From assembly GCA_965202585.1 (NCBI GenBank), contig OZ241828.1, positions 46,438,001-46,502,000 of the forward strand: a DNA stretch of 64,000 nucleotides, read 5' to 3'. Both the position numbers and the translations under genes were made by a program. The stretch comes from Thalia democratica. Lineage: Eukaryota. Below, in pieces: positions 15,840-64,000 of the stretch (positions are counted from its first letter, which is position 1; every line of letters begins with the position of its first letter). Under the pieces are notes generated by a model. It saw nothing but the letters and a program-made list of their open reading frames with translations, had not been told where the DNA came from and did no database searches.

Positions 15840-16132
15840 CTAAAGTTCGTCGTCACATTTTCTAGAACGGCATCCACATTGGGTTGCGCTCATGTAAGAA
15901 ACGGTTTTTACAGAGTTATCAGGACAAGTAAGTTGCACCATTTTTATTTCAGTTTCTTGTGCGTGACAACAACTGCAAGTTCTTGTAAAGTTTCCAGACT
16001 CGAAAGAGTACACAGAACTGCTGACACAAGCTCCTTCACAAACTGACATTTCAACTGCTGTTTCGCTAGTGCACTCATCGATTGTTAACATTTCTTCGTA
16101 AGTTTTCTTCATTGCACAACTGCTTAGTTTTT
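15840..16132 (-). CDS. Terminal exon: C-terminal cystine knot (CTCK), ending KCDDEL*
   Basis: Acceptor ttttacag. Translation EKLSSCAMKK...CEGACVSS...TCSCCHAQ...TCPDNS...QCGCRSRKCDDEL*. The CxGxC, CSCC and CxC pattern matches vWF/mucin CTCK. Stop TAG at 15840-15842. Confidence 0.92.
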
Positions 16133-20475: not shown

Positions 20476-23400
20476 GATATCAATGTAATGTAATAGTTAT
20501 GTTGAAATAGCAGTAAGTTATAATTTAAGTAGACTTATTTAAGAAATACTAGTCTTAGTATGGTATATTTTATTAAAAAGTTCAAAAAAACATCGGTTGG
20601 TACTAGATTTTGTCAAAAATGGTTACCTGTAAGTTGGACAGCAATCGAACTCTTCTTCTATAAGAACTTTACGTTCTCCATCTTTACAGTAAGTAGATGG
20701 ACATCTTTCCTGAGCACAAAGACACCTATATTCTGGACAACAAGCTCCATCAACATTTATAGCGACCATTTCGTAGTTTTCACCGCAAACTGGTTTTGTA
20801 CTATTGCTACACATGCTGTGGTCACATACGCATTCGTACGTAGGACAACAACCTGTCACCTTCTGAACAAGTTCATATCCATGTGCACATTGTGGTGTAT
20901 CATTTTGTGGACAATCTATAGCAGAACATTGAGTTCCACTTTCTAAGCAAGTGCACTCCTCACAATTCTCGTTCCAGACTTCTCCGATCTAGTTTAGTAA
21001 AATTTACTTAACGAACTCATTGAAATAAAAAAGAAATGTTTAAAGAATCTAGTTTAAGTCTTAAAAAATTTGTAATTGTGCTAAAAAAAAATTACAATTT
21101 TTTTTTTAATTAATGTATTATAAAGAAAATAAACTTTTTTAGTTTTTTTAATTGCATCATAGCATTACAATTTTAACTACAATAAAGAGTATTAGTGCTA
21201 AACTTTAGAAGTATAATGTTTTTACTATAAGGAAACAAAATTTTATTAGAGTAAAAATAAGTCAAATTAAATAACTATATTTAAATTGTCGTTTTTATAA
21301 TGAGATATAGTTATTAAAAAAAAAGTACTACGGGTTTTTATTTAGAGAAAAAAGAAACATAATTATTTTTACTTTTAAAAAACAAATAAATTGTCATTAC
21401 TAGAATTAAAAAGTATAAAGTGCTTTATATACTTTGTCCAACATTTAAAACTGGATAAAAGAAATTAAAAACTAACAGTTTTTGTTCCACTCTCACAAGT
21501 TTTATCAGAAGGAACACAAGATGGACAACAATCGCCAGACAAAATAGTCTGTGAATAACCTTGAGGACATGTAACGGTATCACAAATTTCTTGAGTACAT
21601 TTCGAAATACCACCAATACAAATACAATTTGTACATCCTCTGTTTTCTTTCCAAACTGAGCCACTCTAATTTTGAAAATTTTGAATTTAAAAAATTAACT
21701 TTATAGTATTGAATTGTAAAAATTAAGTCAGAAGAGTGACCATAAAAAAAAACTAACAGTATAATAATTATGTTCAGTAGTACATGGACAGTCTTCGCTT
21801 GAAACACAGTTTCTTCCGTCCCAAACTTGGCTACTAGGGCATGGGAGAGAATCTTTAATATTTATACCTGGGCATGTTTGTAAAGTGTTGTTACTAGACA
21901 AAAGTGAAGAAGATTCAATCTTTTTATCCGCAGAAATAAATGTGTATGCATTGTTATTTGACAATTGCGACACTTTTCCATTTTCGACAAGAACCGGTGT
22001 ATATCCTGCGGCATATCCGCCAGCAAATGGTTTGTCACCGGCCATTGGTTTGCCTCCTACAGCCAATCGTGCTGAGTCAAAGTCTCCGAGGTCTTTGTGA
22101 TCGTCAGCGAACACAATACCGTCGTGATCTCCGTAGTAAGAACCGTCTCCCTTGAATGCTGCTGGCATGAAACCTCCGTCGGTAACAATTGAGCTGTCAC
22201 CGTAGACTTCGTCATCTGCAGCTGGCACTCCTTGGATCACAATGGCTTGTTGAGCTGGAGCTGAATCTCCCTTGAACGGCTTGCCGCTGTCGGCAGCAAC
22301 CGGTGAGTATCCTGCGCCGTATCCGCCAGCAAATGGTCTGTCACCGGCCATTGGTTTGCCTCCTACAGCCAATCGTGCTGAGTCAAAGTCTCCGAGGTCT
22401 TTGTGATCGTCAGCGAACACAATACCGTCGTGATCTCCGTAGTAAGAACCGTCTCCCTTGAATGCTGCTGGCATGAAACCTCCGTCGGTAACAATTGAGC
22501 TGTCACCGTAGACTTCGTCATCTGCAGCTGGCACTCCTTGGATCACAATGGCTTGTTGAGCTGGTGCTGAATCTCCCTTGAACGGCTTGCCGCTGTCGGC
22601 AGCAACCGGTGAGTATCCTGCGCCGTATCCGCCAGCAAATGGTCTGTCACCGGCCATTGGTTTGCCTCCTACAGCCAATCGTGCTGAGTCAAAGTCTCCG
22701 AGGTCTTTGTGATCGTCAGCGAACACAATACCGTCGTGATCTCCGTAGTAAGAACCGTCTCCCTTGAATGCTGCTGGCAAGAAACTTCCGTCGGTAACAA
22801 TTGAGCTGTCACCGTAGACTTCGTCATCTGCAGCTGGCACTCCTTGGATCACAATGGCTTGTTGAGCTGGTGCTGAATCTCCCTTGAACGGCTTGCCGCT
22901 GTCGGCAGCAACCGGTGAGTATCCTGCGCCGTATCCGCCAGCAAATGGTCTGTCACCTGCCATTGGTTTGCCTCCTACAGCCAATCGTGATGGATGGTCG
23001 TAACCCTTGTCCTTATGGTTGTTATCGAAGATAACACCTTGATCGTCTGCAACGTATCCGGCGTTGTCGAAGAACGGAACGTCAAACTTGTTACTGTCAC
23101 TGAGAACTTGTTCGTCAGCGTAGAAAGCGTCACTCAATGCTGGAGCACCTCCAACAATAATGGCTTGTTGAGCTGGTGCTGAATCTCCCTTGAACGGCTT
23201 GCCGCTGTCGGCAGCAACCGGTGAGTATCCTGCGCCGTATCCGCCAGCAAATGGTCTGTCACCGGCCATTGGTTTGCCTCCTACAGCCAATCGTGCTGAG
23301 TCAAAGTCTCCGAGGTCTTTGTGATCGTCAGCGAACACAATACCGTCGTGATCTCCGTAGTAAGAACCGTCTCCCTTGAATGCTGCTGGCATGAAACCTC

Positions 23401-26400
23401 CGTCGGTAACAATTGAGCTGTCACCGTAGACTTCGTCATCTGCAGCTGGCACTCCTTGGATCACAATGGCTTGTTGAGCTGGAGCTGAATCTCCCTTGAA
23501 CGGCTTGCCGCTGTCGGCAGCAACCGGTGAGTATCCTGCGCCGTATCCGCCAGCAAATGGTCTGTCACCGGCCATTGGTTTGCCTCCTACAGCCAATCGT
23601 GCTGAGTCAAAGTCTCCGAGGTCTTTGTGATCGTCAGCGAACACAATACCGTCGTGATCTCCGTAGTAAGAACCGTCTCCCTTGAATGCTGCTGGCATGA
23701 AACCTCCGTCGGTAACAATTGAGCTGTCACCGTAGACTTCGTCATCTGCAGCTGGCATTCCTTGGATCACAATGGCTTGTTGAGCTGGTGCTGAATCTCC
23801 CTTGAACGGCTTGCCGCTGTCGGCAGCAACCGGTGAGTATCCTGCGCCGTATCCGCCAGCAAATGGTCTGTCACCTGCCATTGGTTTGCCTCCTACAGCC
23901 AATCGTGCTGAGTCAAAGTCTCCGAGGTCTTTGTGATCGTCAGCGAACACAATACCGTCGTGATCTCCGTAGTAAGAACCGTCTCCCTTGAATGCTGCTG
24001 GCATGAAACCTCCGTCGGTAACAATTGAGCTGTCACCGTAGACTTCGTCATCTGCAGCTGGCACTCCTTGGATCACAATGGCTTGTTGAGCTGGTGCTGA
24101 ATCTCCCTTGAACGGCTTGCCGCTGTCGGCAGCAACCGGTGAGTATCCTGCGCCGTATCCGCCAGCAAATGGTCTGTCACCTGCCATTGGTTTGCCTCCT
24201 ACAGCCAATCGTGATGGATGGTCGTAACCCTTGTCCTTGTGGTTTTTATCGAAGATAACACCTTGATCGTCTGCAACGTATCCGGCGTTGTCGAAGAACG
24301 GAACGTCGAACTTGTTACCGTCACTGAGAACTTGTTCGTCAGCGTAGAAAGCGTCACTCAATGCTGGAGCACCTCCAACAATAATGGCTTGTTGAGCTGG
24401 AGCTGAATCTCCCTTGAACGGCTTGCCGCTGTCGGCAGCAACCGGTGAGTATCCTGCGCCGTATCCGCCAGCAAATGGTCTGTCACCGGCCATTGGTTTG
24501 CCTCCTACAGCCAATCGTGCTGAGTCAAAGTCTCCGAGGTCTTTGTGATCGTCAGCGAACACAATACCGTCGTGATCTCCGTAGTAAGAACCGTCTCCCT
24601 TGAATGCTGCTGGCATGAAACCTCCGTCGGTAACAATTGAGCTGTCACCGTAGACTTCGTCATCTGCAGCTGGCACTCCTTGGATCACAATGGCTTGTTG
24701 AGCTGGTGCTGAATCTCCCTTGAACGGCTTGCCGCTGTCGGCAGCAACCGGTGAGTATCCTGCGCCGTATCCGCCAGCAAATGGTCTGTCACCTGCCATT
24801 GGTTTGCCTCCTACAGCCAATCGTGATGGATGGTCGTAACCCTTGTCCTTGTGGTTGTCATCGAAGATAACACCTTGATCGTCTGCAACGTATCCGGCGT
24901 TGTCGAAGAACGGAACGTCGAACTTGTTACCGTCACTGAGAACTTGTTCGTCAGCGTAGAAAGCGTCACTCAATGCTGGAGCACCTCCAACAATAATGGC
25001 TTGTTGAGCTGGAGCTGAATCTCCCTTGAACGGCTTGCCGCTGTCGGCAGCAACCGGTGAGTATCGTGCGCCGTATCCGCCAGCAAATGGTCTGTCACCG
25101 GCCATTGGTTTGCCTCCTACAGCCAATCGTGCTGAGTCAAAGTCTCCGAGGTCTTTGTGATCGTCAGCGAACACAATACCGTCGTGATCTCCGTAGTAAG
25201 AACCGTCTCCCTTGAATGCTGCTGGCATGAAACCTCCGTCGGTAACAATTGAGCTGTCACCGTAGACTTCGTCATCTGCAGCTGGCACTCCTTGGATCAC
25301 AATGGCTTGTTGAGCTGGTGCTGAATCTCCCTTGAACGGCTTGCCGCTGTCGGCAGCAACCGGTGAGTATCCTGCGCCGTATCCGCCAGCAAATGGTCTG
25401 TCACCTGCCATTGGTTTGCCTCCTACAGCCAATCGTGATGGATGGTCGTAACCCTTGTCCTTGTGGTTGTTATCGAAGATAACACCTTGATCGCCTGCAA
25501 CGTATCCGGCGTTGTCGAAGAACGGAACGTCGAACTTGTTACCGTCACTGAGAACTTGTTCGTCAGCGTAGAAAGCGTCACTCAATGCTGGAGCACCTCC
25601 AACAATAATGGCTTGTTGAGCTGGAGCTGAATCTCCCTTGAACGGCTTGCCGCTGTCGGCAGCAACCGGTGAGTATCGTGCGCCGTATCCGCCAGCAAAT
25701 GGTCTGTCACCGGCCATTGGTTTGCCTCCTACAGCCAATCGTGCTGAGTCAAAGTCTCCGAGGTCTTTGTGATCGTCAGCGAACACAATACCGTCGTGAT
25801 CTCCGTAGTAAGAACCGTCTCCCTTGAATGCTGCTGGCATGAAACCTCCGTCGGTAACAATTGAGCTGTCACCGTAGACTTCGTCATCTGCAGCTGGCAC
25901 TCCTTGGATCACAATGGCTTGTTGAGCTGGTGCTGAATCTCCCTTGAACGGCTTGCCGCTGTCGGCAGCAACCGGTGAGTATCCTGCGCCGTATCCGCCA
26001 GCAAATGGTCTGTCACCTGCCATTGGTTTGCCTCCTACAGCCAATCGTGATGGATGGTCGTAACCCTTGTCCTTGTGGTTGTTATCGAAGATAACACCTT
26101 GATCGTCTGCAACGTATCCGGCGTTGTCGAAGAACGGAACGTCGAACTTGTTACCGTCACTGAGAACTTGTTCGTCAGCGTAGAAAGCGTCACTCAATGC
26201 TGGAGCACCTCCAACAATAATGGCTTGTTGAGCTGGAGCTGAATCTCCCTTGAACGGCTTGCCGCTGTCGGCAGCAACCGGTGAGTATCCTGCGCCGTAT
26301 CCGCCAGCAAATGGTCTGTCACCGGCCATTGGTTTGCCTCCTACAGCCAATCGTGCTGAGTCAAAGTCTCCGAGGTCTTTGTGATCGTCAGCGAACACAA

Positions 26401-29400
26401 TACCGTCGTGATCTCCGTAGTAAGAACCGTCTCCCTTGAATGCTGCTGGCATGAAACCTCCGTCGGTAACAATTGAGCTGTCACCGTAGACTTCGTCATC
26501 TGCAGCTGGCACTCCTTGGATCACAATGGCTTGTTGAGCTGGTGCTGAATCTCCCTTGAACGGCTTGCCGCTGTCGGCAGCAACCGGTGAGTATCCTGCG
26601 CCGTATCCGCCAGCAAATGGTCTGTCACCGGCCATTGGTTTGCCTCCTACAGCCAATCGTGCTGAGTCAAAGTCTCCGAGGTCTTTGTGATCGTCAGCGA
26701 ACACAATACCGTCGTGATCTCCGTAGTAAGAACCGTCTCCCTTGAATGCTGCTGGCATGAAACCTCCGTCGGTAACAATTGAGCTGTCACCGTAGACTTC
26801 GTCATCTGCAGCTGGCACTCCTTGGATCACAATGGCTTGTTGAGCTGGTGCTGAATCTCCCTTGAACGGCTTGCCGCTGTCGGCAGCAACCGGTGAGTAT
26901 CCTGCGCCGTATCCGCCAGCAAATGGTCTGTCACCTGCCATTGGTTTGCCTCCTACAGCCAATCGTGATGGATGGTCGTAACCCTTGTCCTTGTGGTTGT
27001 TATCGAAGATAACACCTTGATCGTCTGCAACGTATCCGGCGTTGTCGAAGAACGGAACGTCGAACTTGTTACCGTCACTGAGAACTTGTTCGTCAGCGTA
27101 GAAAGCGTCACTCAATGCTGGAGCACCTCCAACAATAATGGCTTGTTGAGCTGGAGCTGAATCTCCCTTGAACGGCTTGCCGCTGTCGGCAGCAACCGGT
27201 GAGTATCCTGCGCCGTATCCGCCAGCAAATGGTCTGTCACCTGCCATTGGTTTGCCTCCTACAGCCAATCGTGCTGAGTCAAAGTCTCCGAGGTCTTTGT
27301 GATCGTCAGCGAACACAATACCGTCGTGATCTCCGTAGTAAGAACCGTCTCCCTTGAATGCTGCTGGCATGAAACCTCCGTCGGTAACAATTGAGCTGTC
27401 ACCGTAGACTTCGTCATCTGCAGCTGGCACTCCTTGGATCACAATGGCTTGTTGAGCTGGTGCTGAATCTCCCTTGAACGGCTTGCCGCTGTCGGCAGCA
27501 ACCGGTGAGTATCCTGCGCCGTATCCGCCAGCAAATGGTCTGTCACCTGCCATTGGTTTGCCTCCTACAGCCAATCGTGATGGATGGTCGTAACCCTTGT
27601 CCTTGTGGTTTTTATCGAAGATAACACCTTGATCGTCTGCAACGTATCCGGCGTTGTCTAAGAACGGAACGTCGAACTTGTTACCGTCACTGAGAACTTG
27701 TTCGTCAGCGTAGAAAGCGTCACTCAATGCTGGAGCACCTCCAACAATAATGGCTTGTTGAGCTGGAGCTGAATCTCCCTTGAACGGCTTGCCGCTGTCG
27801 GCAGCAACCGGTGAGTATCCTGCGCCGTATCCGCCAGCAAATGGTCTGTCACCGGCCATTGGTTTGCCTCCTACAGCCAATCGTGCTGAGTCAAAGTCTC
27901 CGAGGTCTTTGTGATCGTCAGCGAACACAATACCGTCGTGATCTCCGTAGTAAGAACCGTCTCCCTTGAATGCTGCTGGCATGAAACCTCCGTCGGTAAC
28001 AATTGAGCTGTCACCGTAGACTTCGTCATCTGCAGCTGGCACTCCTTGGATCACAATGGCTTGTTGAGCTGGTGCTGAATCTCCCTTGAACGGCTTGCTG
28101 CTGTCGGCAGCAACCGGTGAGTATCCTGCGCCGTATCCGCCAGCAAATGGTCTGTCACCTGCCATTGGTTTGCCTCCTACAGCCAATCGTGATGGATGGT
28201 CGTAACCCTTGTCCTTGTGGTTGTTATCGAAGATAACACCTTGATCGTCTGCAACGTATCCGGCGTTGTCGAAGAACGGAACGTCGAACTTGTTACCGTC
28301 ACTGAGAACTTGTTCGTCAGCGTAGAAAGCGTCACTCAATGCTGGAGCACCTCCAACAATAATGGCTTGTTGAGCTGGAGCTGAATCTCCCTTGAACGGC
28401 TTGCCGCTGTCGGCAGCAACCGGTGAGTATCGTGCGCCGTATCCGCCAGCAAATGGTCTGTCACCGGCCATTGGTTTGCCTCCTACAGCCAATCGTGCTG
28501 AGTCAAAGTCTCCGAGGTCTTTGTGATCGTCAGCGAACACAATACCGTCGTGATCTCCGTAGTAAGAACCGTCTCCCTTGAATGCTGCTGGCATGAAACC
28601 TCCGTCGGTAACAATTGAGCTGTCACCGTAGACTTCGTCATCTGCAGCTGGCACTCCTTGGATCACAATGGCTTGTTGAGCTGGTGCTAAATCTCCCTTG
28701 AACGGCTTGCCGCTGTCGGCAGCAACCGGTGAGTATCCTGCGCCGTATCCGCCAGCAAATGGTCTGTCACCTGCCATTGGTTTGCCTCCTACAGCCAATC
28801 GTGATGGATGGTCGTAACCCTTGTCCTTGTGGTTGTTATCGAAGATAACACCTTGATCGTCTGCAACGTATCCGGCGTTGTCGAAGAACGGAACGTCGAA
28901 CTTGTTACCGTCACTGAGAACTTGTTCGTCAGCGTAGAAAGCGTCACTCAATGCTGGAGCACCTCCAACAATAATGGCTTGTTGAGCTGGAGCTGAATCT
29001 CCCTTGAACGGCTTGCCGCTGTCGGCAGCAACCGGTGAGTATCGTGCGCCGTATCCGCCAGCAAATGGTCTGTCACCGGCCATTGGTTTGCCTCCTACAG
29101 CCAATCGTGCTGAGTCAAAGTCTCCGAGGTCTTTGTGATCGTCAGCGAACACAATACCGTCGTGATCTCCGTAGTAAGAACCGTCTCCCTTGAATGCTGC
29201 TGGCATGAAACCTCCGTCGGTAACAATTGAGCTGTCACCGTAGACTTCGTCATCTGCAGCTGGCACTCCTTGGATCACAATGGCTTGTTGAGCTGGTGCT
29301 GAATCTCCCTTGAACGGCTTGCCGCTGTCGGCAGCAACCGGTGAGTATCCTGCGCCGTATCCGCCAGCAAATGGTCTGTCACCGGCCATTGGTTTGCCTC

Positions 29401-50400: not shown

Positions 50401-53400
50401 GTTGAGCTGGAGCTGAATCTCCCTTGAACGGCTTGCCGCTGTCGGCAGCAACCGGTGAGTATCCTGCGCCGTATCCGCCAGCAAATGGTCTGTCACCGGC
50501 CATTGGTTTGCCTCCTACAGCCAATCGTGCTGAGTCAAAGTCTCCGAGGTCTTTGTGATCGTCAGCGAACACAATACCGTCGTGATCTCCGTAGTAAGAA
50601 CCGTCTCCCTTGAATGCTGCTGGCATGAAACCTCCGTCGGTAACAATTGAGCTGTCACCGTAGACTTCGTCATCTGCAGCTGGCACTCCTTGGATCACAA
50701 TGGCTTGTTGAGCTGGTGCTGAATCTCCCTTGAACGGCTTGCCGCTGTCGGCAGCAACCGGTGAGTATCCTGCGCCGTATCCGCCAGCAAATGGTCTGTC
50801 ACCGGCCATTGGTTTGCCTCCTACAGCCAATCGTGATGGATGGTCGTAACCCTTGTCCTTGTGGTTGTTATCGAAGATAACACCTTGATCGTCTGCAACG
50901 TAGCCGGCGTTGTCGAAGAACGGAACGTCGAACTTGTTACCGTCACTGAGAACTTGTTCGTCAGCGTAGAAAGCGTCACTCAATGCTGGAGCACCTCCAA
51001 CAATAATGGCTTGTTGAGCTGGAGCTGAATCTCCCTTGAACGGCTTGCCGCTGTCGGCAGCAACCGGTGAGTATCCTGCGCCGTATCCGCCAGCAAATGG
51101 TCTGTCACCTGCCATTGGTTTGCCTCCTACAGCCAATCGTGATGGATGGTCGTAACCCTTGTCCTTGTGGTTGTTATCGAAGATAACACCTTGATCGTCT
51201 GCAACGTATCCGGCGTTGTCGAAGAACGGAACGTCGAACTTGTTACCGTCACTGAGAACTTGTTCGTCAGCGTAGAAAGCGTCACTTAATGCTGGAGCAC
51301 CTCCAACAATAATGGCTTGTTGAGCTGGAGCTGAATCTCCCTTGAACGGCTTGCCGCTGTCGGCAGCAACCGGTGAGTATCCTGCGCCGTATCCGCCAGC
51401 AAATGGTCTGTCACCGGCCATTGGTTTGCCTCCTACAGCCAATCGTGCTGAGTCAAAGTCTCCGAGGTCTTTGTGATCGTCAGCGAACACAATACCGTCG
51501 TGATCTACGTAGTAAGAACCGTCTCCCTTGAATGCTGCTGGCATGAAACCTCCGTCGGTAACAATTGAGCTGTCACCGTAGACTTCGTCATCTGCAGCTG
51601 GCACTCCTTGGATCACAATGGCTTGTTGAGCTGGTGCTGAATCTCCCTTGAACGGCTTGCCGCTGTCGGCAGCAACCGGTGAGTATCCTGCGCCGTATCC
51701 GCCAGCAAATGGTCTGTCACCGGCCATTGGTTTGCCTCCTACAGCCAATCGTGCTGAGTCAAAGTCTCCGAGGTCTTTGTGATCGTCAGCGAACACAATA
51801 CCGTCGTGATCTCCGTAGTAAGAACCGTCTCCCTTGAATGCTGCTGGCATGAAACCTCCGTCGGTAACAATTGAGCTGTCACCGTAGACTTCGTCATCTG
51901 CAGCTGGCACTCCTTGGATCACAATGGCTTGTTGAGCTGGTGCTGAATCTCCCTTGAACGGCTTGCCGCTGTCGGCAGCAACCGGTGAGTATCCTGCGCC
52001 GTATCCGCCAGCAAATGGTCTGTCACCTGCCATTGGTTTGCCTCCTACAGCCAATCGTGATGGATGGTCGTAACCCTTGTCCTTGTGGTTGTTATCGAAG
52101 ATAACACCTTGATCGTCTGCAACGTATCCGGCGTTGTCGAAGAACGGAACGTCGAACTTGTTACCGTCACTGAGAACTTGTTCGTCAGCGTAGAAAGCGT
52201 CACTCAATGCTGGAGCACCTCCAACAATAATGGCTTGTTGAGCTGGAGCTGAATCTCCCTTGAACGGCTTGCCGCTGTCGGCAGCAACCGGTGAGTATCC
52301 TGCGCCGTATCCAGAAGCAAATGGTCTGTCACCGGCCATTGGTTTGCCTCCTACAGCCAATCGTGCTGAGTCAAAGTCTCCGAGGTCTTTGTGATCGTCA
52401 GCGAACACAATACCGTCGTGATCTCCGTAGTAAGAACCGTCTCCCTTGAATGCTGCTGGCATGAAACCTCCGTCGGTAACAATTGAGCTGTCACCGTAGA
52501 CTTCGTCATCTGCAGCTGGCACTCCTTGGATCACAATGGCTTGTTGAGCTGGTGCTGAATCTCCCTTGAACGGCTTGCCGCTGTCGGCAGCAACCGGTGA
52601 GTATCCTGCGCCGTATCCGCCAGCAAATGGTCTGTCACCGGCCATTGGTTTGCCTCCTACAGCCAATCGTGATGGATGGTCGTAACCCTTGTCCTTGTGG
52701 TTGTTATCGAAGATAACACCTTGATCGTCTGCAACGTAGCCGGCGTTTTCGAAGAACGGAACGTCGAACTTGTTACCGTCACTGAGAACTTGTTCGTCAG
52801 CGTAGAAAGCGTCACTCAATGCTGGAGCACCTCCAACAATAATGGCTTGTTGAGCTGGAGCTGAATCTCCCTTGAACGGCTTGCCGCTGTCGGCAGCAAC
52901 CGGTGAGTATCCTGCGCCGTATCCGCCAGCAAATGGTCTGTCACCGGCCATTGGTTTGCCTCCTACAGCCAATCGTGCTGAGTCAAAGTCTCCGAGGTCT
53001 TTGTGATCGTCAGCGAACACAATACCGTCGTGATCTCCGTAGTAAGAACCGTCTCCCTTGAATGCTGCTGGCATGAAACCTCCGTCGGTAACAATTGAGC
53101 TGTCACCGTAGACTTCGTCATCTGCAGCTGGCACTCCTTGGATCACAATGGCTTGTTGAGCTGGTGCTGAATCTCCCTTGAACGGCTTGCCGCTGTCGGC
53201 AGCAACCGGTGAGTATCCTGCGCCGTATCCGCCAGCAAATGGTCTGTCACCTGCCATTGGTTTGCCTCCTACAGCCAATCGTGATGGATGGTCGTAACCC
53301 TTGTCCTTGTGGTTGTTATCGAAGATAACACCTTGATCGTCTGCAAAGTATCCGGCGTTGTCGAAGAACGGAACGTCGAACTTGTTACCGTCACTGAGAA

Positions 53401-56400
53401 CTTGTTCGTCAGCGTAGAAAGCGTCACTCAATGCTGGAGCACCTCCAACAATAATGGCTTGTTGAGCTAGTGCTGAATCTCCCTTGAACGGCTTGCCGCT
53501 GTCGGCAGCAACCGGTGAGTATCCTGCACCGTATCCGCCAGCAAATGGTCTGTCACCTGCCATTGGTTTGCCTCCTACAGCCAATCGTGATGGATGGTCG
53601 TAACCCTTGTCCTTGTGGTTGTTATCGAAGATAACACCTTGATCGTCTGCAACGTAGCCGGCGTTGTCGAAGAACGGAACATCGAACTTGTTACCGTCAC
53701 TGAGAACTTGTTCGTCAGCGTAGACAGCGTCACTCAATGCTGGAGCACTTCCAACAATAATGGCTTGTTGAGCTGGTGCTGAATCTCCCTTGAACGGCTT
53801 GCCGCTGTCGGCAGCAACCGGTGAGTATCCTGCGCCGTATCCGCCAGCAAATGGTCTGTCACCGGCCATTGGTTTGCCTCCTACAGCCAATCGTGCTGAG
53901 TCAAAGTCTCCGAGGTCTTTGTGATCGTCAGCGAACACAATACCGTCGTGATCTCCGTAGTAAGAACCGTCTCCCTTGAATGCTGCTGGCATGAAACCTC
54001 CGTCGGTAACAATTGAGCTGTCACCGTAGACTTCGTCATCTGCAGCTGGCACTCCTTGGATCACAATGGCTTGTTGAGCTGGTGCTGAATCTCCCTTGAA
54101 CGGCTTGCCGCTGTCGGCAGCAACCGGTGAGTATCCTGCGCCGTATCCGCCAGCAAATGGTCTGTCACCTGCCATTGGTTTGCCACCTACAGCCAATCGT
54201 GCTGAGTCAAAGTCTCCGAGGTCTTTGTGATCGTCAGCGAACACAATACCGTCGTGATCTCCGTAGTAAGAACCGTCTCCCTTGAATGCTGCTGGCATGA
54301 AACCTCCGTCGGTAACAATTGAGCTGTCACCGTAGACTTCGTCATCTGCAGCTGGCACTCCTTGGATCACAATGGCTTGTTGAGCTGGTGCTGAATCTCC
54401 CTTGAACGGCTTGCCGCTGTCGGCAGCAACCGGTGAGTATCCTGCGCCGTATCCGCCAGCAAATGGTCTGTCACCTGCCATTGGTTTGCCTCCTACAGCC
54501 AATCGTGATGGATGGTCGTAACCCTTGTCCTTGTGGTTGTTATCGAAGATAACACCTTGATCGTCTGCAACGTATCCGGCGTTGTCGAAGAACGGAACGT
54601 CGAACTTGTTACCGTCACTGAGAACTTGTTCGTCAGCGTAGAAAGCGTCACTCAATGCTGGAGCACCTCCAACAATAATGGCTTGTTGAGCTGGAGCTGA
54701 ATCTCCCTTGAACGGCTTGCCGCTGTCGGCAGCAACCGGTGAGTATCCTGCGCCGTATCCAGAAGCAAATGGTCTGTCACCGGCCATTGGTTTGCCTCCT
54801 ACAGCCAATCGTGCTGAGTCAAAGTCTCCGAGGTCTTTGTGATCGTCAGCGAACACAATACCGTCGTGATCTCCGTAGTAAGAACCGTCTCCCTTGAATG
54901 CTGCTGGCATGAAACCTCCGTCGGTAACAATTGAGCTGTCACCGTAGACTTCGTCATCTGCAGCTGGCACTCCTTGGATCACAATGGCTTGTTGAGCTGG
55001 TGCTGAATCTCCCTTGAACGGCTTGCCGCTGTCGGCAGCAACCGGTGAGTATCCTGCGCCGTATCCGCCAGCAAATGGTCTGTCACCGGCCATTGGTTTG
55101 CCTCCTACAGCCAATCGTGATGGATGGTCGTAACCCTTGTCCTTGTGGTTGTTATCGAAGATAACACCTTGATCGTCTGCAACGTAGCCGGCGTTTTCGA
55201 AGAACGGAACGTCGAACTTGTTACCGTCACTGAGAACTTGTTCGTCAGCGTAGAAAGCGTCACTCAATGCTGGAGCACCTCCAACAATAATGGCTTGTTG
55301 AGCTGGAGCTGAATCTCCCTTGAACGGCTTGCCGCTGTCGGCAGCAACCGGTGAGTATCCTGCGCCGTATCCGCCAGCAAATGGTCTGTCACCGGCCATT
55401 GGTTTGCCTCCTACAGCCAATCGTGCTGAGTCAAAGTCTCCGAGGTCTTTGTGATCGTCAGCGAACACAATACCGTCGTGATCTCCGTAGTAAGAACCGT
55501 CTCCCTTGAATGCTCCTGGCATGAAACCTCCGTCGGTAACAATTGAGCTGTCACCGTAGACTTCGTCATCTGCAGCTGGCAATCCTTGGATCACAATGGC
55601 TTGTTGAGCTGGTGCTGAATCTCCCTTGAACGGCTTGCCGCTGTCGGCAGCAACCGGTGAGTATCCTGCGCCGTATCCGCCAGCAAATGGTCTGTCACCG
55701 GCCATTGGTTTGCCTCCTACAGCCAATCGTGATGGATGGTCGTAACCCTTGTCCTTGTGGTTGTTATCGAAGATAACACCTTGATCGTCTGCAACGTATC
55801 CGGCGTTGTCGAAGAACGGAACGTCGAACTTGTTACCGTCACTGAGAACTTGTTCGTCAGCGTAGAAAGCGTCACTCAATGCTGGAGCACCTCCAACAAT
55901 AATGGCTTGTTGAGCTAGTGCTGAATCTCCCTTGAACGGCTTGCCGCTGTCGGCAGCAACCGGTGAGTATCCTGCACCGTATCCGCCAGCAAATGGTCTG
56001 TCACCTGCCATTGGTTTGCCTCCTACAGCCAATCGTGATGGATGGTCGTAACCCTTGTCCTTGTGGTTGTTATCGAAGATAACACCTTGATCGTCTGCAA
56101 CGTAGCCGGCGTTGTCGAAGAACGGAACGTCGAACTTGTTACCGTCACTGAGAACTTGTTCGTCAGCGTAGACAGCGTCACTCAATGCTGGAGCACTTCC
56201 AACAATAATGGCTTGTTGAGCTGGTGCTGAATCTCCCTTGAACGGCTTGCCACTGTCGGCAGCAACCGGTGAGTATCCTGCGCCGTATCCGCCAGCAAAT
56301 GGTCTGTCACCGGCCATTGGTTTGCCTCCTACAGCCAATCGTGCTGAGTCAAAGTCTCCGAGGTCTTTGTGATCGTCAGCGAACACAATACCGTCGTGAT

Positions 56401-59400
56401 CTCCGTAGTAAGAACCGTCTCCCTTGAATGCTGCTGGCATGAAACCTCCGTCGGTAACAATTGAGCTGTCACCGTAGACTTCGTCATCTGCAGCTGGCAC
56501 TCCTTGGATCACAATGGCTTGTTGAGCTGGTGCTGAATCTCCCTTGAACGGCTTGCCGCTGTCGGCAGCAACCGGTGAGTATCCTGCGCCGTATCCGCCA
56601 GCAAATGGTCTGTCACCTGCCATTGGTTTGCCACCTACAGCCAATCGTGCTGAGTCAAAGTCTCCGAGGTCTTTGTGATCGTCAGCGAACACAATACCGT
56701 CGTGATCTCCGTAGTAAGAACCGTCTCCCTTGAATGCTGCTGGCATGAAACCTCCGTCGGTAACAATTGAGCTGTCACCGTAGACTTCGTCATCTGCAGC
56801 TGGCACTCCTTGGATCACAATGGCTTGTTGAGCTGGTGCTGAATCTCCCTTGAACGGCTTGCCGCTGTCGGCAGCAACCGGTGAGTATCCTGCGCCGTAT
56901 CCGCCAGCAAATGGTCTGTCACCGGCCATTGGTTTGCCTCCTACAGCCAATCGTGCTGAGTCAAAGTCTCCGAGGTCTTTGTGATCGTCAGCGAACACAA
57001 TACCGTCGTGATCTCCGTAGTAAGAACCGTCTCCCTTGAATGCTGCTGGCATGAAACCTCCGTCGGTAACAATTGAGCTGTCACCGTAGACTTCGTCATC
57101 TGCAGCTGGCACTCCTTGGATCACAATGGCTTGTTGAGCTGGTGCTGAATCTCCCTTGAACGGCTTGCCGCTGTCGGCAGCAACCGGTGAGTATCCTGCG
57201 CCGTATCCGCCAGCAAATGGTCTGTCACCTGCCATTGGTTTGCCTCCTACAGCCAATCGTGATGGATGGTCGTAACCCTTGTCCTTGTGGTTGTTATCGA
57301 AGATAACACCTTGATCGTCTGCAACGTATCCGGCGTTGTCGAAGAACGGAACGTCGAACTTGTTACCGTCACTGAGAACTTGTTCGTCAGCGTAGAAAGC
57401 GTCACTCAATGCTGGAGCACCTCCAACAATAATGGCTTGTTGAGCTGGAGCTGAATCTCCCTTGAACGGCTTGCCGCTGTCGGCAGCAACCGGTGAGTAT
57501 CCTGCGCCGTATCCGCCAGCAAATGGTCTGTCACCGGCCATTGGTTTGCCTCCTACAGCCAATCGTGCTGAGTCAAAGTCTCCGAGGTCTTTGTGATCGT
57601 CAGCGAACACAATACCGTCGTGATCTCCGTAGTAAGAACCGTCTCCCTTGAATGCTCCTGGCATGAAACCTCCGTCGGTAACAATTGAGCTGTCACCGTA
57701 GACTTCGTCATCTGCAGCTGGCAATCCTTGGATCACAATGGCTTGTTGAGCTGGTGCTGAATCTCCCTTGAACGGCTTGCCGCTGTCGGCAGCAACCGGT
57801 GAGTATCCTGCGCCGTATCCGCCAGCAAATGGTCTGTCACCGGCCATTGGTTTGCCTCCTACAGCCAATCGTGATGGATGGTCGTAACCCTTGTCCTTGT
57901 GGTTGTTATCGAAGATAACACCTTGATCGTCTGCAACGTATCCGGCGTTGTCGAAGAACGGAACGTCGAACTTGTTACCGTCACTGAAAACTTGTTCGTC
58001 AGCGTAGAAAGCGTCACTCAATGCTGGAGCACCTCCAACAATAATGGCTTGTTGAGCTAGTGCTGAATCTCCCTTGAACGGCTTGCCGCTGTCGGCAGCA
58101 ACCGGTGAGTATCCTGCACCGTATCCGCCAGCAAATGGTCTGTCACCTGCCATTGGTTTGCCTCCTACAGCCAATCGTGATGGATGGTCGTAACCCTTGT
58201 CCTTGTGGTTGTTATCGAAGATAACACCTTGATCGTCTGCAACGTAGCCGGCGTTGTCGAAGAACGGAACATCGAACTTGTTACCGTCACTGAGAACTTG
58301 TTCGTCAGCGTAGACAGCGTCACTCAATGCTGGAGCACTTCCAACAATAATGGCTTGTTGAGCTGGTGCTGAATCTCCCTTGAACGGCTTGCCGCTGTCG
58401 GCAGCAACCGGTGAGTATCCTGCGCCGTATCCGCCAGCAAATGGTCTGTCACCGGCCATTGGTTTGCCTCCTACAGCCAATCGTGCTGAGTCAAAGTCTC
58501 CGAGGTCTTTGTGATCGTCAGCGAACACAATACCGTCGTGATCTCCGTAGTAAGAACCGTCTCCCTTGAATGCTGCTGGCATGAAACCTCCGTCGGTAAC
58601 AATTGAGCTGTCACCGTAGACTTCGTCATCTGCAGCTGGCACTCCTTGGATCACAATGGCTTGTTGAGCTGGTGCTGAATCTCCCTTGAACGGCTTGCCG
58701 CTGTCGGCAGCAACCGGTGAGTATCCTGCGCCGTATCCGCCAGCAAATGGTCTGTCACCTGCCATTGGTTTGCCACCTACAGCCAATCGTGCTGAGTCAA
58801 AGTCTCCGAGGTCTTTGTGATCGTCAGCGAACACAATACCGTCGTGATCTCCGTAGTAAGAACCGTCTCCCTTGAATGCTGCTGGCATGAAACCTCCGTC
58901 GGTAACAATTGAGCTGTCACCGTAGACTTCGTCATCTGCAGCTGGCACTCCTTGGATCACAATGGCTTGTTGAGCTGGTGCTGAATCTCCCTTGAACGGC
59001 TTGCCGCTGTCGGCAGCAACCGGTGAGTATCCTGCGCCGTATCCGCCAGCAAATGGTCTGTCACCGGCCATTGGTTTGCCTCCTACAGCCAATCGTGCTG
59101 AGTCAAAGTCTCCGAGGTCTTTGTGATCGTCAGCGAACACAATACCGTCGTGATCTCCGTAGTAAGAACCGTCTCCCTTGAATGCTGCTGGCATGAAACC
59201 TCCGTCGGTAACAATTGAGCTGTCACCGTAGACTTCGTCATCTGCAGCTGGCACTCCTTGGATCACAATGGCTTGTTGAGCTGGTGCTGAATCTCCCTTG
59301 AACGGCTTGCCGCTGTCGGCAGCAACCGGTGAGTATCCTGCGCCGTATCCGCCAGCAAATGGTCTGTCACCTGCCATTGGTTTGCCTCCTACAGCCAATC

Positions 59401-62400
59401 GTGATGGATGGTCGTAACCCTTGTCCTTGTGGTTGTTATCGAAGATAACACCTTGATCGTCTGCAACGTATCCGGCGTTGTCGAAGAACGGAACGTCGAA
59501 CTTGTTACCGTCACTGAGAACTTGTTCGTCAGCGTAGAAAGCGTCACTCAATGCTGGAGCACCTCCAACAATAATGGCTTGTTGAGCTGGAGCTGAATCT
59601 CCCTTGAACGGCTTGCCGCTGTCGGCAGCAACCGGTGAGTATCCTGCGCCGTATCCGCCAGCAAATGGTCTGTCACCGGCCATTGGTTTGCCTCCTACAG
59701 CCAATCGTGCTGAGTCAAAGTCTCCGAGGTCTTTGTGATCGTCAGCGAACACAATACCGTCGTGATCTCCGTAGTAAGAACCGTCTCCCTTGAATGCTGC
59801 TGGCATGAAACCTCCGTCGGTAACAATTGAGTTGTCACCGTAGATTTCGTCATCTGCAGCTGGCACTCCTTGGATCACAATGGCTTGTTGAGCTGGTGCT
59901 GAATCTCCCTTGAACGGCTTGCCGCTGTCGGCAGCAACCGGTGAGTATCCTGCGCCGTATCCGCCAGCAAATGGTCTGTCACCTGCCATTGGTTTGCCTC
60001 CTACAGCCAATCGTGATGGATGGTCGTAACCCTTGTCCTTGTGGTTGTTATCGAAGATAACACCTTGATCGTCTGCAACGTATCCGGCGTTGTCGAAGAA
60101 CGGAACGTCGAACTTGTTACCGTCACTGAGAACTTGTTCGTCAGCGTAGAAAGCGTCACTCAATGCTGGAGCACCTCCAACAATAATGGCTTGTTGAGCT
60201 GGAGCTGAATCTCCCTTGAACGGCTTGCCGCTGTCGGCAGCAACCGGTGAGTATCCTGCGCCGTATCCAGAAGCAAATGGTCTGTCACCGGCCATTGGTT
60301 TGCCTCCTACAGCCAATCGTGCTGAGTCAAAGTCTCCGAGGTCTTTGTGATCGTCAGCGAACACAATACCGTCGTGATCTCCGTAGTAAGAACCGTCTCC
60401 CTTGAATGCTGCTGGCATGAAACCTCCGTCGGTAACAATTGAGCTGTCACCGTAGACTTCGTCATCTGCAGCTGGCACTCCTTGGATCACAATGGCTTGT
60501 TGAGCTGGTGCTGAATCTCCCTTGAACGGCTTGCCGCTGTCGGCAGCAACCGGTGAGTATCCTGCGCCGTATCCGCCAGCAAATGGTCTGTCACCTGCCA
60601 TTGGTTTGCCTCCTACAGCCAATCGTGATGGATGGTCGTAACCCTTGTCCTTGTGGTTGTTATCGAAGATAACACCTTGATCGTCTGCAACGTATCCGGC
60701 GTTGTCGAAGAACGGAACGTCGAACTTGTTACCGTCACTGAGAACTTGTTCGTCAGCGTAGAAAGCGTCACTCAATGCTGGAGCACCTCCAACAATAATG
60801 GCTTGTTGAGCTGGAGCTGAATCTCCCTTAAACGGCTTGCCGCTGTCGGCAGCAACCGGTGAGTATCCTGCGCCGTATCCGCCAGCAAATGGTCTGTCAC
60901 CGGCCATTGGTTTGCCTCCTACATCCAATCGTGCTGAGTCAAAGTCTCCGAGGTCTTTGTGATCGTCAGCGAACACAATACCGTCGTGATCTCCGTAGTA
61001 AGAACCGTCTCCCTTGAATGCTGCTGGCATGAAACCTCCGTCGGTAACAATTGAGCTGTCACCGTAGACTTCGTCATCTGCAGCTGGCACTCCTTGGATC
61101 ACAATGGCTTGTTGAGCTAGTGCTGAATCTCCCTTGAACGGCTTGCCGCTGTCGGCAGCAACCGGTGAGTATCCTGCGCCGTATCCGCCAGCAAATGGTC
61201 TGTCACCTGCCATTGGTTTTCCTCCTACAGCCAATCGTGCTGAGTCAAAGTCTCCGAGGTCTTTGTGATCGTCAGCGAACACAATACCGTCGTGATCTCC
61301 GTAGTAAGAACCGTCTCCCTTGAATGCTGCTGGCATGAAACCTCCGTCGGTAACAATTGAACTGTCACCGTAGACTTCGTCATATGCAGCTGGCACTCCT
61401 TGGATCACAATGGCTTGTTGAGCTGGTGCTGAATCTCCCTTGAACGGCTTGCCGCTGTCGGCAGCAACCGGTGAGTATCCTGCGCCGTATCCGCCAGCAA
61501 ATGGTCTGTCACCGGCCATTGGTTTGCCTCCTACAGCCAATCGTGCTGAGTCAAAGTCTCCGAGGTCTTTGTGATCGTCAGCGAACACAATACTGTCGTG
61601 ATCTCCGTAGTAAGAACCGTCTCCCTTGAATGCTGCTGGCATGAAACCTCCGTCGGTAACAATTGAGCTGTCACCGTAGACTTCGTCATCTGCAGCTGGC
61701 ACTCCTTGGATCACAATGGCTTGTTGAGCTGGTGCTGAATCTCCCTTGAACGGCTTGCCGCTGTCGGCAGCAACCGGTGAGTATCCTGCGCCGTATCCGC
61801 CAGCAAATGGTCTGTCACCGGCCATTGGTTTGCCTCCTACAGCCAATCGTGCTGAGTCAAAGTCTCCGAGGTCTTTGTGATCGTCAGCGAACACAATACC
61901 GTCGTGATCTCCGTAGTAAGAACCGTCTCCCTTGAATGCTGCTGGCATGAAACCTCCGTCGGTAACAATTGAGCTGTCACCGTAGACTTCGTCATCTGCA
62001 GCTGGCACTCCTTGGATCACAATGGCTTGTTGAGCTGGTGCTGAATCTCCCTTGAACGGCTTGCCGCTGTCGGCAGCAACCGGTGAGTATCCTGCGCCGT
62101 ATCCGCCAGCAAATGGTCTGTCACCTGCCATTGGTTTGCCTCCTACAGCCAATCGTGATGGATGGTCGTAATCCTTGTCCTTGTGGTTGTTATCGAAGAT
62201 AACACCTTGATCGTCTGCAACGTATCCGGCGTTGTCGAAGAACGGAACGTCGAACTTGTTACCGTCACTGAGAACTTGTTCGTCAGCGTAGAAAGCGTCA
62301 CTCAATAATGGAGCACCTCCAACAATAATGGCTTGTTGAGCTGGAGCTGAATCTCCCTTGAACGGCTTGCCGCTGTCGGCAGCAACCGGTGAGTATCCTG

Positions 62401-64000
62401 CGCCGTATCCGCCAGCAAATGGTCTGTCACCGGCCATTGGTTTGCCTCCTACAGCCAATCGTGCTGAGTCAAAGTCTCCGAGGTCTTTGTGATCGTCAGC
62501 GAACACAATACCGTCGTGATCTCCGTAGTAAGAACCGTCTCCCTTGAATGCTGCTGGCATGAAACCTCCGTCGGTAACAATTGAGCTGTCACCGTAGACT
62601 TCGTCATCTGCAGCTGGCACTCCTTGGATCACAATGGCTTGTTGAGCTGGAGCTGAATCTCCCTTGAACGGCTTGCCGCTGTCGGCAGCAACCGGTGAGT
62701 ATCCTGCGCCGTATCCGCCAGCAAATGGTCTGTCACCGGCCATTGGTTTGCCTCCTACAGTCAATCGTGCTGAGTCAAAGTCTCCGAGGTCTTTGTGATC
62801 GTCAGCGAACACAATACCGTCGTGATCTCCGTAGTAAGAACCGTCTCCCTTGAATGCTGCTGGCATGAAACCTCCGTCGGTAACAATTGAGCTGTCACCG
62901 TAGACTTCGTCATCTGCAGCTGGCACTCCTTGGATCACAATGGCTTGTTGAGCTGGTGCTGAATCTCCCTTGAACGGCTTGCCGCTGTCGGCAGCAACCG
63001 GTGAGTATCCTGCGCCGTATCCGCCAGCAAATGGTCTGTCACCGGCCATTGGTTTGCCTCCTACAGCCAATCGTGCTGAGTCAAAGTCTCCGAGGTCTTT
63101 GTGATCGTCAGCGAACACAATACGGTCGTGATCTCCGTAGTAAGAACCGTCTCCCTTGAATGCTCCTGGCATGAAACCTCCGTCGGTAACAATTGAGCTG
63201 TCACCGTAGACTTCGTCATCTGCAGCTGGCAATCCTTGGATCACAATGGCTTGTTGAGCTGGTGCTGAATCTCCCTTGAACGGCTTGCCGCTGTCGGCAG
63301 CAACCGGTGAGTATCCTGCGCCGTATCCGCCAGCAAATGGTCTGTCACCGGCCATTGGTTTGCCTCCTACAGCCAATCGTGCTGAGTCAAAGTCTCCGAG
63401 GTCTTTGTGATCGTCAGCGAACACAATACCGTCGTGATCTCCGTAGTAAGAACCGTCTCCCTTGAATGCTGCTGGCATGAAACCTCCGTCGGTAACAATT
63501 GAGCTGTCACCGTAGACTTCGTCATCTGCAGCTGGCACTCCTTGGATCACAATGGCTTGTTGAGCTGGTGCTGAATCACCCTTGAACGGCTTGCCGCTGT
63601 CGGCAGCAACCGGTGAGTATCCTGCGCCGTATCCGCCAGCAAATGGTCTGTCACCTGCCATTGGTTTGCCTCCTACAGCCAATCGTGATGGATGGTCGTA
63701 ACCCTTGTCCTTGTGGTTGTTATCGAAGATAACACCTTGATCGTCTGCAACGTATCCGGCGTTGTCGAAGAACGGAACGTCGAACTTGTTACCGTCACTG
63801 AGAACTTGTTCGTCAGCGTAGAAAGCGTCACTCAATGCTGGAGCACCTCCAACAATAATGGCTTGTTGAGCTGGAGCTGAATCTCCCTTGAACGGCTTGC
63901 CGCTGTCGGCAGCAACCGGTGAGTATCCTGCGCCGTATCCGCCAGCAAATGGTCTGTCACCGGCCATTGGTTTGCCTCCTACAGCCAATCGTGCTGAGTC
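15840..64000 (-). CDS. Giant secreted vWF/gel-forming-mucin-family protein (5'-truncated in window; 17 exons; at least 15,275 aa) with a non-PTS Asp/Gly/Ala/Tyr-rich tandem repeat domain
   Basis: All 16 introns are GT-AG and every exon phase matches by manual translation. 14,081 codons from the giant exon plus 1,194 aa from 16 Cys-rich exons. The domain order VWC-VWD-C8-TIL-VWC(n)-CTCK is the established vWF/mucin C-terminal arrangement. Confidence 0.93.
16285..16465 (-). CDS. Exon: VWC-like module
   Basis: VGQTWAAKNDTCTSCKCEM...GCCQYCET; ttttag acceptor, gtttgt donor, phase 0 to 1. Confidence 0.88.
16539..16789 (-). CDS. Exon: VWC module
   Basis: SCSPPDMCVHNDESYKPGTTWNEDICTECSC...ACCGDCVPTTCHYDGVEHT; donor gtaagt, phase 1 to 0. 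Confidence 0.9.
16978..17255 (-). CDS. Exon: Cys-rich VWC-like repeats
   Basis: SLCPLNELKCESW...SCCTQTRCECD...CCKKSTCVC...CGCKQ; donor gttagt, phase 2 to 1. Confidence 0.88.
17327..17523 (-). CDS. Exon: Cys-rich VWC-like repeats
   Basis: KMIDQSKCCVETTQCECDSTQC...SCCPSVFEQVCTCD; donor gtaatt, phase 0 to 2. Confidence 0.88.
17716..17881 (-). CDS. Exon: Cys-rich VWC-like repeats
   Basis: CDRASCPSVEQPVCSEGEKLQVRNPGQCCVQYQCVCDSSTC...YKLK; donor gtgagt, phase 2 to 0. Confidence 0.88.
18014..18318 (-). CDS. Exon: Cys-rich VWC-like repeats
   Basis: DFKCPVFEKPICG...ECCVEFRCTC...ECCKSQVCEC...RCCNEYEC; donor gtaagt, phase 0 to 2. Confidence 0.88.
18389..18508 (-). CDS. Exon: Cys-rich VWC-like segment
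   Basis: VQMTAACDVPKTCRPNEITKTIATNTCCQVNECVPQETCK; phase 0 to 0; not in the ORF track. Confidence 0.85.
18638..18781 (-). CDS. Exon: end of TIL and start of VWC
   Basis: VLLDGVCVKPSNCPVCVDESGKGRFIGESWTKSDNLCVTSTCTNDGNI; donor gtgagt, phase 0 to 0. Confidence 0.87.
18875..19095 (-). CDS. Exon: end of C8 and TIL domain
   Basis: ATPCHALSSLANTCTTCDKVCVDWRNDELCPVECPVGTTYKACAQ...GCFCNDNM. The WR...CPxxCP...Y..C...GCxC pattern is C8-TIL. Phase 1 to 0. Confidence 0.9.
19163..19355 (-). CDS. Exon: linker and C8 domain
   Basis: IGSITDATIDSFNL...YQLCGEFMANQFASCSVDKLMYLGSCASYLSN; phase 0 to 1. Confidence 0.85.
19417..19656 (-). CDS. Exon: second half of VWD domain
   Basis: IEIDGENHELELEG...WSVSVPHTYQNQVTGLCGAC. 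The (Y/F)xxxxxGLCGxC motif is diagnostic of VWD. Donor gtaagt. Confidence 0.92.
19722..19939 (-). CDS. Exon: first half of VWD domain
   Basis: CVCKGLSTYWTMFDHKL...GTFTLV...DFAVTVERAECDSAVCLTSITI. This corresponds to the VWD start CxxxGxxHYxTFD, without GDPH. Phase 1 to 0. Confidence 0.9.
20000..20226 (-). CDS. Exon: VWC module
   Basis: CEQVQCLDKNGVVYHAGDVF...CSECVCDKNGNPICQKKICP...GCCPLYTCS; donor gtaagt, phase 2 to 1. Confidence 0.9.
20360..20403 (-). ncRNA. Hammerhead ribozyme-like motif in an intron of the giant gene (sense orientation)
   Basis: Minus strand reads CUUGG-CUGAGGA-C-GCGU(AUUAA)ACGC-A-GAAA-CAGCUG-U-A-CCAAG: 5-bp stem I, 4-bp stem II with a C.A mismatch at the closing position, palindromic stem III ACAGCUGU, GUA triplet. 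It lies between (TA)n tracts. Confidence 0.65.
20421..20468. repeat. (TA)n microsatellite
   Basis: About 48 bp of near-perfect AT dinucleotide repeat in intron 20227-20626. Confidence 0.95.
20627..20988 (-). CDS. Exon: VWC and VWC-like repeats
   Basis: IGEVWNENCEECTCLESGTQC...GCCPTYECVCDHSMC...ACCPEYRCLC...DCCPTY; phase 0 to 2. Confidence 0.9.
21477..21665 (-). CDS. Exon: VWC module
   Basis: SGSVWKENRGCTNCICIGGISKCTQEICDTVTCPQG...GDCCPSCVPSDKTCESGTKT; attag acceptor, gttagt donor, 189 nt, phase 0 to 0. The ORF track shows this region in the wrong frame. Confidence 0.92.
21758..64000 (-). CDS. Giant coding exon (at least 42,243 nt, open at window edge)
   Basis: No stop or frameshift from 64000 to 21758. 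Donor ACT|gttagt at 21757 is in phase with the next exon. The last ~110 aa are a degenerate repeat, a Ser/Asn-rich linker and CPG...CPSSQVWDGRNCVSSEDCPC. Confidence 0.92.
22064..63985 (-). repeat. Coding tandem array: 137 complete 306-bp units of two types (52 A, 85 B)
   Basis: 41,922 bp / 306 = 137. Shared 42 aa: AVGGKPMAGDRPFAGGYGAGYSPVAADSGKPFKGDSAPAQQA. A module: IIVGGAPALSDAFYADEQVLSDGNKFDVPFFDNAGYVADDQGVIFDNNHKDKGYDHPSRL. B module: IVIQGVPAADDEVYGDSSIVTDGGFMPAAFKGDGSYYGDHDGIVFADDHKDLGDFDSARL. A degenerate partial unit lies at ~21975-22063. Confidence 0.97.

Follow-up and report, generated by a model that had tools for sequence, protein, structure and literature searches.

A giant two-module coding exon on a mucin/VWF scaffold in Thalia democratica, with a module order that probably records repeat turnover

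The stretch of the Thalia democratica genome analysed here (64,000 nucleotides (nt) of contig OZ241828.1, G000:C4:46438001-46502000; hereafter the window) carries a long tandem array of 306-bp coding units, each ending in one of two module types, X or Y. We put a probability of about 0.72 on the reading that this array makes up the middle exon of an expressed giant gene, gel-forming-mucin/VWF in type, from an animal of the marine plankton, and that the irregular X/Y order is a record of repeat turnover rather than a code, because crossovers within a block shared by all units would make the junctions between modules and block duplications would spread them.

Anatomy of the array and its two module types

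Coding is on the minus strand. Tandem Repeats Finder (TRF) reports a 306-bp repeat in a single array of 137.3 copies that begins at 21992 and reaches the window end, the G+C content of array DNA is 53% compared with 22-35% in the flanks, and the list of open reading frames holds a single open frame that spans 21728 to the window end. With the following 80 kb added for extension, the giant exon comprises 19,830 codons (~59.5 kb) and ends ~17.2 kb (about 17,220 nt) past the window end. It is among the longest coding exons known to us, the largest human coding exons being about 17-22 kb. The whole exon holds 191 complete, gap-free units of 102 amino acids (aa) with no indels or stops, opens its array with a partial variable module and closes it with a partial constant block. 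Each unit is a 45-aa constant block (135 bp) followed by a 57-aa module (171 bp), and the modules split cleanly in two, X (n = 116) and Y (n = 75). About 120 distinct variants are spread across the array, nearly one marker per unit or two. The window part of the array, which contains 85 X and 52 Y units without an indel, is laid out as follows.

21758..64000, minus strand: window part of the giant coding exon, open to G000:C4 ~46,519,220 (open reading frame list and extension; 3' end fixed by a spliced RNA contig)
22070..63991, minus strand: 137 complete 306-bp/102-aa units, units 54-190 of 191, each a 135-bp constant block plus a 171-bp X or Y module
22241..22375, minus strand: example constant block, unit 190, with marker position 30 at window 22346 and marker position 117 at window 22259
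21992..22069, minus strand: trailing partial constant block, decaying into unique sequence at the 3' array edge (TRF, unit listing and edge comparison)

An earlier note on this DNA, in which X was called B and Y was called A, had described B runs of up to 5, four AA pairs and no AAA, and the units of the window match it exactly (longest X run 5, Y-Y pairs 4, Y-Y-Y 0); the whole exon has 5 Y-Y pairs and 46 X-X junctions. The array end that the note set at 63985 does not hold, as the array continues beyond the window. Its gap-free alignment of A and B over 60 aa with 20 identities was reproduced, and counts as 17/57 with a shared block of 45 aa.

X and Y are true homologues, with similarity far beyond chance (z = 7.9 for ungapped BLOSUM scores, z = 12.7 for local alignment), but old ones. 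Their consensus DNAs are 98.5% identical over positions 1-135, in line with the near-identity at DNA level noted earlier for the shared block, and 50% identical over positions 136-306, with a sharp boundary at 135/136. By the Nei-Gojobori method, synonymous divergence (dS) rises 27-fold across one codon boundary, from 0.06 in the constant block to 1.62 in the variable part (nonsynonymous divergence, dN, 0.69), and the constant blocks of X and Y units are identical at 45/45 aa. Homogenisation extends to silent sites, so concerted evolution, and not protein constraint alone, accounts for the near-identity of the shared block; the jump at a single codon boundary makes this an unusually clean case of mosaic concerted evolution. 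The earlier note had proposed an ancient duplication and a comparison of divergence in shared and variable blocks; that comparison (0.06 versus 1.62, the latter saturated) bears the duplication out, as does a tree in which X and Y separate with units of relatives (see below). Its further claim that the shared block stays homogenised stands on dS and on the 45/45 aa, but the block is no more uniform than each module type is within itself. Special homogenisation of the block was rejected: its nucleotide diversity is ~0.008 without two marker sites, compared with 0.007 and 0.010 within the module types.

Crossovers in the shared block and the order of the modules

Two silent third-codon sites are polymorphic in the constant block, at positions 30 (C/A) and 117 (A/T). 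The base at site 30 goes with the type of the module upstream (p = 1e-26, Fisher test) and the base at site 117 with the type of the module downstream (p = 3e-27), and the combinations at sites 30..117 are distributed over the junctions of the exon as follows.

Y-to-X junctions: A..A in 62/70
X-to-Y junctions: C..T in 50/69
X-to-X junctions: C..A in 30/46
X-to-X junctions: A..A in 10/46
X-to-X junctions: C..T in 6/46

When an X-to-Y block and a Y-to-X block exchange out of register, the expected recombinant is C..A, and X-X blocks are mostly of this kind. The linkage of the two sites to their neighbouring modules and the recombinant X-X blocks support recombination by unequal crossover inside the shared block, which upholds the earlier proposal that the block is an in-frame recombination site. 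The mapping of crossover points that the note had called for places X-X crossovers 10:30:6 over the three intervals set by the markers, a split that matches a crossover point uniform over 30, 87 and 18 bp (10.2 : 29.6 : 6.1); because the junctions are not independent events, the fit is only suggestive. Two silent markers here let crossover points be read from one haplotype.

A turnover history for the array can be outlined on this basis. The ancestor would have been an old two-unit (X-Y) repeat whose 57-aa modules became too diverged to recombine with each other, so that each would be homogenised within its own type only. The 135-bp block would still pair with any copy and undergo concerted evolution across the whole array. 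In-frame X-X (or Y-Y) junctions would arise when an exchange out of register, or a loop-out deletion, has its crossover in that block, later multi-unit block duplications would spread them, and the excess of X-X over Y-Y would be a founder effect, not selection.

The Y-Y pairs carry the argument for block duplication. In the window they are strongly depleted relative to shuffled strings, with 4 observed and 19.4 +/- 2.8 expected (0/100,000 shuffles as low), and the earlier note had proposed possible selection against A runs and a 'two-letter code'. The pairs lie in two places.

53282..58483, minus strand: block with three Y-Y pairs, units 72/73, 79/80 and 87/88, with private variants in common at lags of 7-8 units
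50834-51445, minus strand: fourth Y-Y pair in the window, units 95/96, in the same periodic pattern and with one of those variants in common

Private variants in three adjacent units recur from one of the pairs 72/73, 79/80 and 87/88 to the next, at lags of 7 and 8, and the first Y of each pair bears the same two amino-acid changes. Because the same private variants recur at these lags, at least three of the four window Y-Y pairs are copies of one event, duplicated in blocks, and the four are not independent events. Locally, type strings recur at lags 7-8 as well as private variants, and the array contains (XXY)n and (XY)n stretches and XXXXY repeats; X-X junctions therefore also spread in blocks.

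The asymmetry between X-X and Y-Y was compared with simulations of neutral unequal exchange that let every shared block recombine with every other, but a module only with modules of its own type. Neutral growth from a short seed via multi-unit duplications gives an asymmetry as strong as the observed one in 0.19-0.37 of runs. Within-array variants have a ratio of nonsynonymous to synonymous changes (N:S) near neutral. The array edges are diverged: 19/171 positions differ in the leading partial module and 9 positions in unit 0, compared with an interior mean of 1.2, and the trailing partial constant block decays progressively. Near-neutral N:S and diverged edges are typical of arrays turning over by unequal exchange. 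Selection against Y-Y is not needed for the observed asymmetry, because the Y-Y pairs share an origin and neutral block duplication yields such an asymmetry. Of the earlier claims about order, the depletion of AA is thus confirmed as a fact about the string, and its reading as selection against A runs or as a code is not supported, since ordinary repeat turnover can account for it; agreement of AA frequency with a neutral crossover model is reached under block duplication (19-37% of runs), but not in a steady-state model (P <= 0.012). A striking 'grammar' in a repeat string can stem from a few founder events that were later copied, a caution for similar findings.

Functional constraint on the order is the alternative that survives best, and it is unlikely. 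It would have Y need X flanks, as an X-Y structural or binding unit, with Y-Y selected against and the X:Y pattern tuning the polymer. The strong depletion of Y-Y relative to both shuffles and the steady-state model fits it, reciprocal exchange should yield X-X and Y-Y equally, and the few related transcript fragments (see below) contain no Y-Y-type junction. However, the exon, which is open and expressed, has five Y-Y junctions; three or more of these pairs are copies of one event and so were duplicated, not purged; neutral block-duplication histories reach the asymmetry in the share of runs given above; within-array variants show almost no purifying selection; and no fold or interface is predicted. 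That the X/Y order is selected or varies meaningfully between individuals, with Y needing X neighbours and the in-frame block retuning a feeding or housing polymer, is a long shot; if true, it would be a natural modular 'block copolymer' tuned by recombination.

Gene scaffold, relatives and remaining alternatives

Pfam finds scaffold domains on both sides of the giant exon, all on the minus strand. Upstream of the exon are Sushi matches, followed by VWD (one over the Pfam cut-off, E = 1.5e-7, and one just under, 21.6 bits versus 22.9), C8 (two matches, E = 2.2e-16 and 6.7e-10) and TIL (two over the cut-off, 2e-13 and 1.2e-10, and two weaker). These D-assembly domains (VWD, C8 and TIL) lie 2-9 kb upstream of the giant exon, and the order of the fragments points to some three VWD-C8-TIL assemblies. 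The gene would begin upstream of the Sushi exons, at >92.6 kb in extended coordinates. Downstream of the giant exon is a run of cysteine-rich exons, two with a VWC match, and a terminal cystine knot at the stop codon. The gene is spliced and expressed, because an oligo-dT RNA contig joins 21758 to 21665 across a 92-nt intron; about half of the sampled words are also present in several marine metatranscriptome runs. The features downstream of the exon are as follows.

21666..21757, minus strand: 92-nt GT..AG intron after the giant exon (joint 21665/21758 in a 4,061-nt oligo-dT RNA contig, run X9, and in run X11)
21477..21665, minus strand: next exon, cysteine-rich; the X9 contig covers 21477-21665 and then leaves the stretch, the frame is open down to 21468 and the low end is approximate
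20626..20988, minus strand: open frame with a sub-cut-off VWC match (Pfam PF00093, 23.7 bits versus 27.6, E = 5.9e-5); open-frame limits, not exon borders
16518..16796, minus strand: open frame with a VWC domain (Pfam PF00093, E = 1.1e-8); open-frame limits, not exon borders
15843..16160, minus strand: open frame with a C-terminal cystine knot (CTCK; Pfam PF00007, E = 5.3e-9) and a stop codon at its end; start of the open frame, not of the exon

Per 102 aa, the units contain 14-16 D+E, 7-8 K+R, 6-8 S+T, 7-8 P and no Cys; they are acidic and poor in Ser/Thr, with much Gly, Ala, Asp, Tyr and Phe. Mucins proper have a central tandem-repeat domain that is Pro/Thr/Ser-rich and O-glycosylated. Because the units are not of that composition, we would file the gene with the gel-forming mucin/VWF scaffold and not as a classical mucin. 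No Pfam match was found in the YX dimer or in either non-repeat end of the exon, AlphaFold2 on a 10-row dimer alignment gave a mean confidence score (pLDDT) of 35 with no secondary structure and no confident fold, and a search of the ESM Atlas by features gave no usable match. The protein may be a polyanionic spacer of a disulfide-linked secreted polymer, for example a feeding mucus or a filter/house.

Several smaller observations concern the same gene and its surroundings. The predicted protein ends in C-D-D-E-L right after the cystine knot (window 15843-15863), which resembles, without matching, the K/H-DEL endings used for retrieval to the endoplasmic reticulum; the likeness is probably coincidental. 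Beside an (AT)n run in an intron of the giant gene (window:20270-20480) is an interspersed element of ~120-180 bp with >70 genome copies at 80-99% identity, mostly >90%; Rfam on the intron (19900-20700) found no hammerhead at E <= 0.01 and only a sub-threshold mir-297 match on the (AT)n run. An exon-by-exon search for GH6 and cellulose synthase, made to test the tunicate label, yielded neither. Two non-coding tandem repeats lie downstream, at window:10224-10588 (147-bp unit, 2.5 copies) and window:33-214 (41/83-bp unit with a CCGG-rich core, 4.4 copies).

Relatives of the units are known as protein fragments only. Two large protein searches found no relatives other than short ocean metatranscriptome fragments (MERC source, ERR run accessions), a handful of which are the sole relatives among 5.8 billion clustered proteins. 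A profile search of 1.84 billion representatives gave 6 matches in all, one of which, the bacterial S-layer/Ig protein P0010, was rejected as compositional; a further word search, this time from P0007, a distant relative, brought in P0008 alone; a scan of JGI metagenomes returned 102 pattern matches and 0 relatives; and a contig search found no DNA encoding P0001, P0002 or P0004. Close relatives have both X and Y, with a constant block identical to ours at 45/45 aa and modules that differ at 4-8/57 positions, and X-to-Y and X-to-X junctions occur in independent ocean transcripts. P0007 has two unit types of its own, whose constant blocks agree at 39/45 aa with each other and at 24/45 with ours, so that copies are more alike within a genome (45/45 here, 39/45 in the P0007 taxon) than between taxa (24/45). 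Read by eye, the divergent island of P0007 is ~25 aa wide, compared with 57 aa here. A maximum-likelihood tree built from the variable modules joins Y to one P0007 type (support 86/87) and X to the P0008 unit (94/92), and X and Y as sisters are rejected by the approximately unbiased (AU) test (p = 0.042). Because of the relatives' unit types, the tree and the AU test, the two module types appear to predate these taxa, and the shared block appears to have been homogenised within each taxon.

Traces of related sequence exist elsewhere in the same genome. An open frame of 1,351 aa at G000:C7:18573299-18577350 (minus strand), in which an unrelated ~46-aa repeat occurs ~15 times, contains a decayed Y-module end and a decayed X-module end followed by 'RL', and is 51-59% identical to the ocean transcript P0011. 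A lone ~165-bp fragment at G000:C5 ~14484083-14484247 (minus strand) consists of the end of a constant block and the greater part of an X module, at 83% aa identity and with one codon fewer. Its surroundings are AT-rich, and AG and GT border it as they would a small exon. Run X1 has a 654-nt contig that seems to represent this locus (129-nt match, same 3-nt gap), with about half the depth of the flanks. The 111-aa unit of a neighbouring giant gene shows no significant similarity to the 102-aa unit (BLASTP E ~0.5) and has only short motifs such as I-V-G-G-A in common with it.

Capture of one module type from a paralogous gene, brought recently beside an existing constant block by non-allelic recombination, would account for the very sharp identity boundary at 135/136 and could draw on the decayed X-end-like and Y-end-like motifs of the C7 gene and on the stray X-type fragment on C5. 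We consider it very improbable: X and Y align in register and gap-free over the full 57 aa, the two types are neighbours in transcripts from close as well as distant relatives, and an intact X or Y module is present at no other locus in the genome. Equally remote is a misassembly of the order or number of near-identical units, which the ~99% identity of units over 58 kb, the collapse of short-read contigs to pieces of 58-248 nt and the lack of an alternative haplotig would favour, but which 19,830 codons without frameshift, stop or indel, run X1 depths of six repeat unitigs that relative to flank depth are 0.8-1.23 times the assembly copy counts, the density of distinct variants and the junctions seen in independent ocean transcripts speak against. 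Depth in run X3, which is labelled as another organism, is a separate matter: relative to flank depth, X-specific unitigs reach ~1.7-2.3 times the assembly count and one Y-specific unitig 1.1 times (comparison unitigs window:22348-22595 and window:23103-23161). The X excess may be a real difference in the X:Y ratio or a coverage bias, and is a weak hint of composition variation.

Some results weigh against the reading of the order as a turnover record on a mucin/VWF scaffold. Under steady length, a long alternating start and small offsets, an asymmetry of <=5 in 51 is rare (P <= 0.012), which leaves some probability to selection or a mutational bias. Mean DNA distance singles out no lag and points to no higher-order period for the array as a whole; once corrected for 834 tests, overall DNA distances mark no block pair as significantly closer, and the evidence for block duplication consists of rare shared variants and type-string matches. 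The order was read from one haplotype and, with short-read contigs collapsing the array, is without an independent check. The module tree has 57 columns, long branches and short metatranscriptome fragments, and its AU p of 0.042 is borderline. Given the pLDDT of 35, the function proposed for the units derives from composition and scaffold only.

Comparison with known systems

Dimeric alpha-satellite arrays with A/B-type monomers and their higher-order repeats offer a non-coding parallel: an old two-unit repeat whose types stay distinct, each being homogenised, with an order disturbed by unequal exchange and edges that are more diverged. The array described here likewise has two old types and edges more diverged than its interior. 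Unlike alpha-satellite, it is coding and in frame, part of its unit is homogenised across both types (mosaic concerted evolution), and mean DNA distance shows no lag that would mark a regular higher-order period. The Balbiani-ring genes of Chironomus encode giant (~1 MDa) secreted polymer proteins with long tandem arrays and constant and variable unit parts. There, cysteines occur in the constant regions and a short subrepeat forms the variable part, whereas each unit here is free of cysteine and varies by having one of two discrete homologous modules, and the termini are of mucin/VWF type.

Spider silk genes resemble this gene in having a single giant exon, several unit types and homogenised copies. 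In Latrodectus, repeat types follow a regular order in MaSp1 and an irregular one in MaSp2, and copies are near-identical in DNA, which has been ascribed to unequal crossing over and concerted evolution (PMC1885213); intragenic homogenisation is reported for AcSp1 (PMC3933166). Silk sequence and terminal domains are unrelated: beside the array, Pfam finds only mucin/VWF-type domains and no spidroin N- or C-terminal domain. MaSp ensemble repeats are ~30 aa long (PMC1885213), so the units here are three times longer. Unlike silk genes, this exon has only two types, with an identical 135-bp block and silent markers that map crossovers. The likeness is one of mode of evolution only.

The closest counterparts in architecture are the gel-forming mucins and VWF, a family in which one scaffold carries different central modules (PMC6109156). 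As in MUC2 and Ci-GFM1 of Ciona (PMC6109156), N-terminal VWD-C8-TIL and C-terminal VWC and cystine-knot domains flank a very large tandem-repeat central exon. Unlike in gel-forming mucins, the centre is not Pro/Thr/Ser-rich, has no Cys and has no Pfam match; it is an array of 191 long units, each of 102 aa and of one of two types, in a ~59.5-kb exon, and Sushi domains precede the D assemblies. The 102-aa unit is a previously undescribed central module on the mucin/VWF scaffold, outside any Pfam family.

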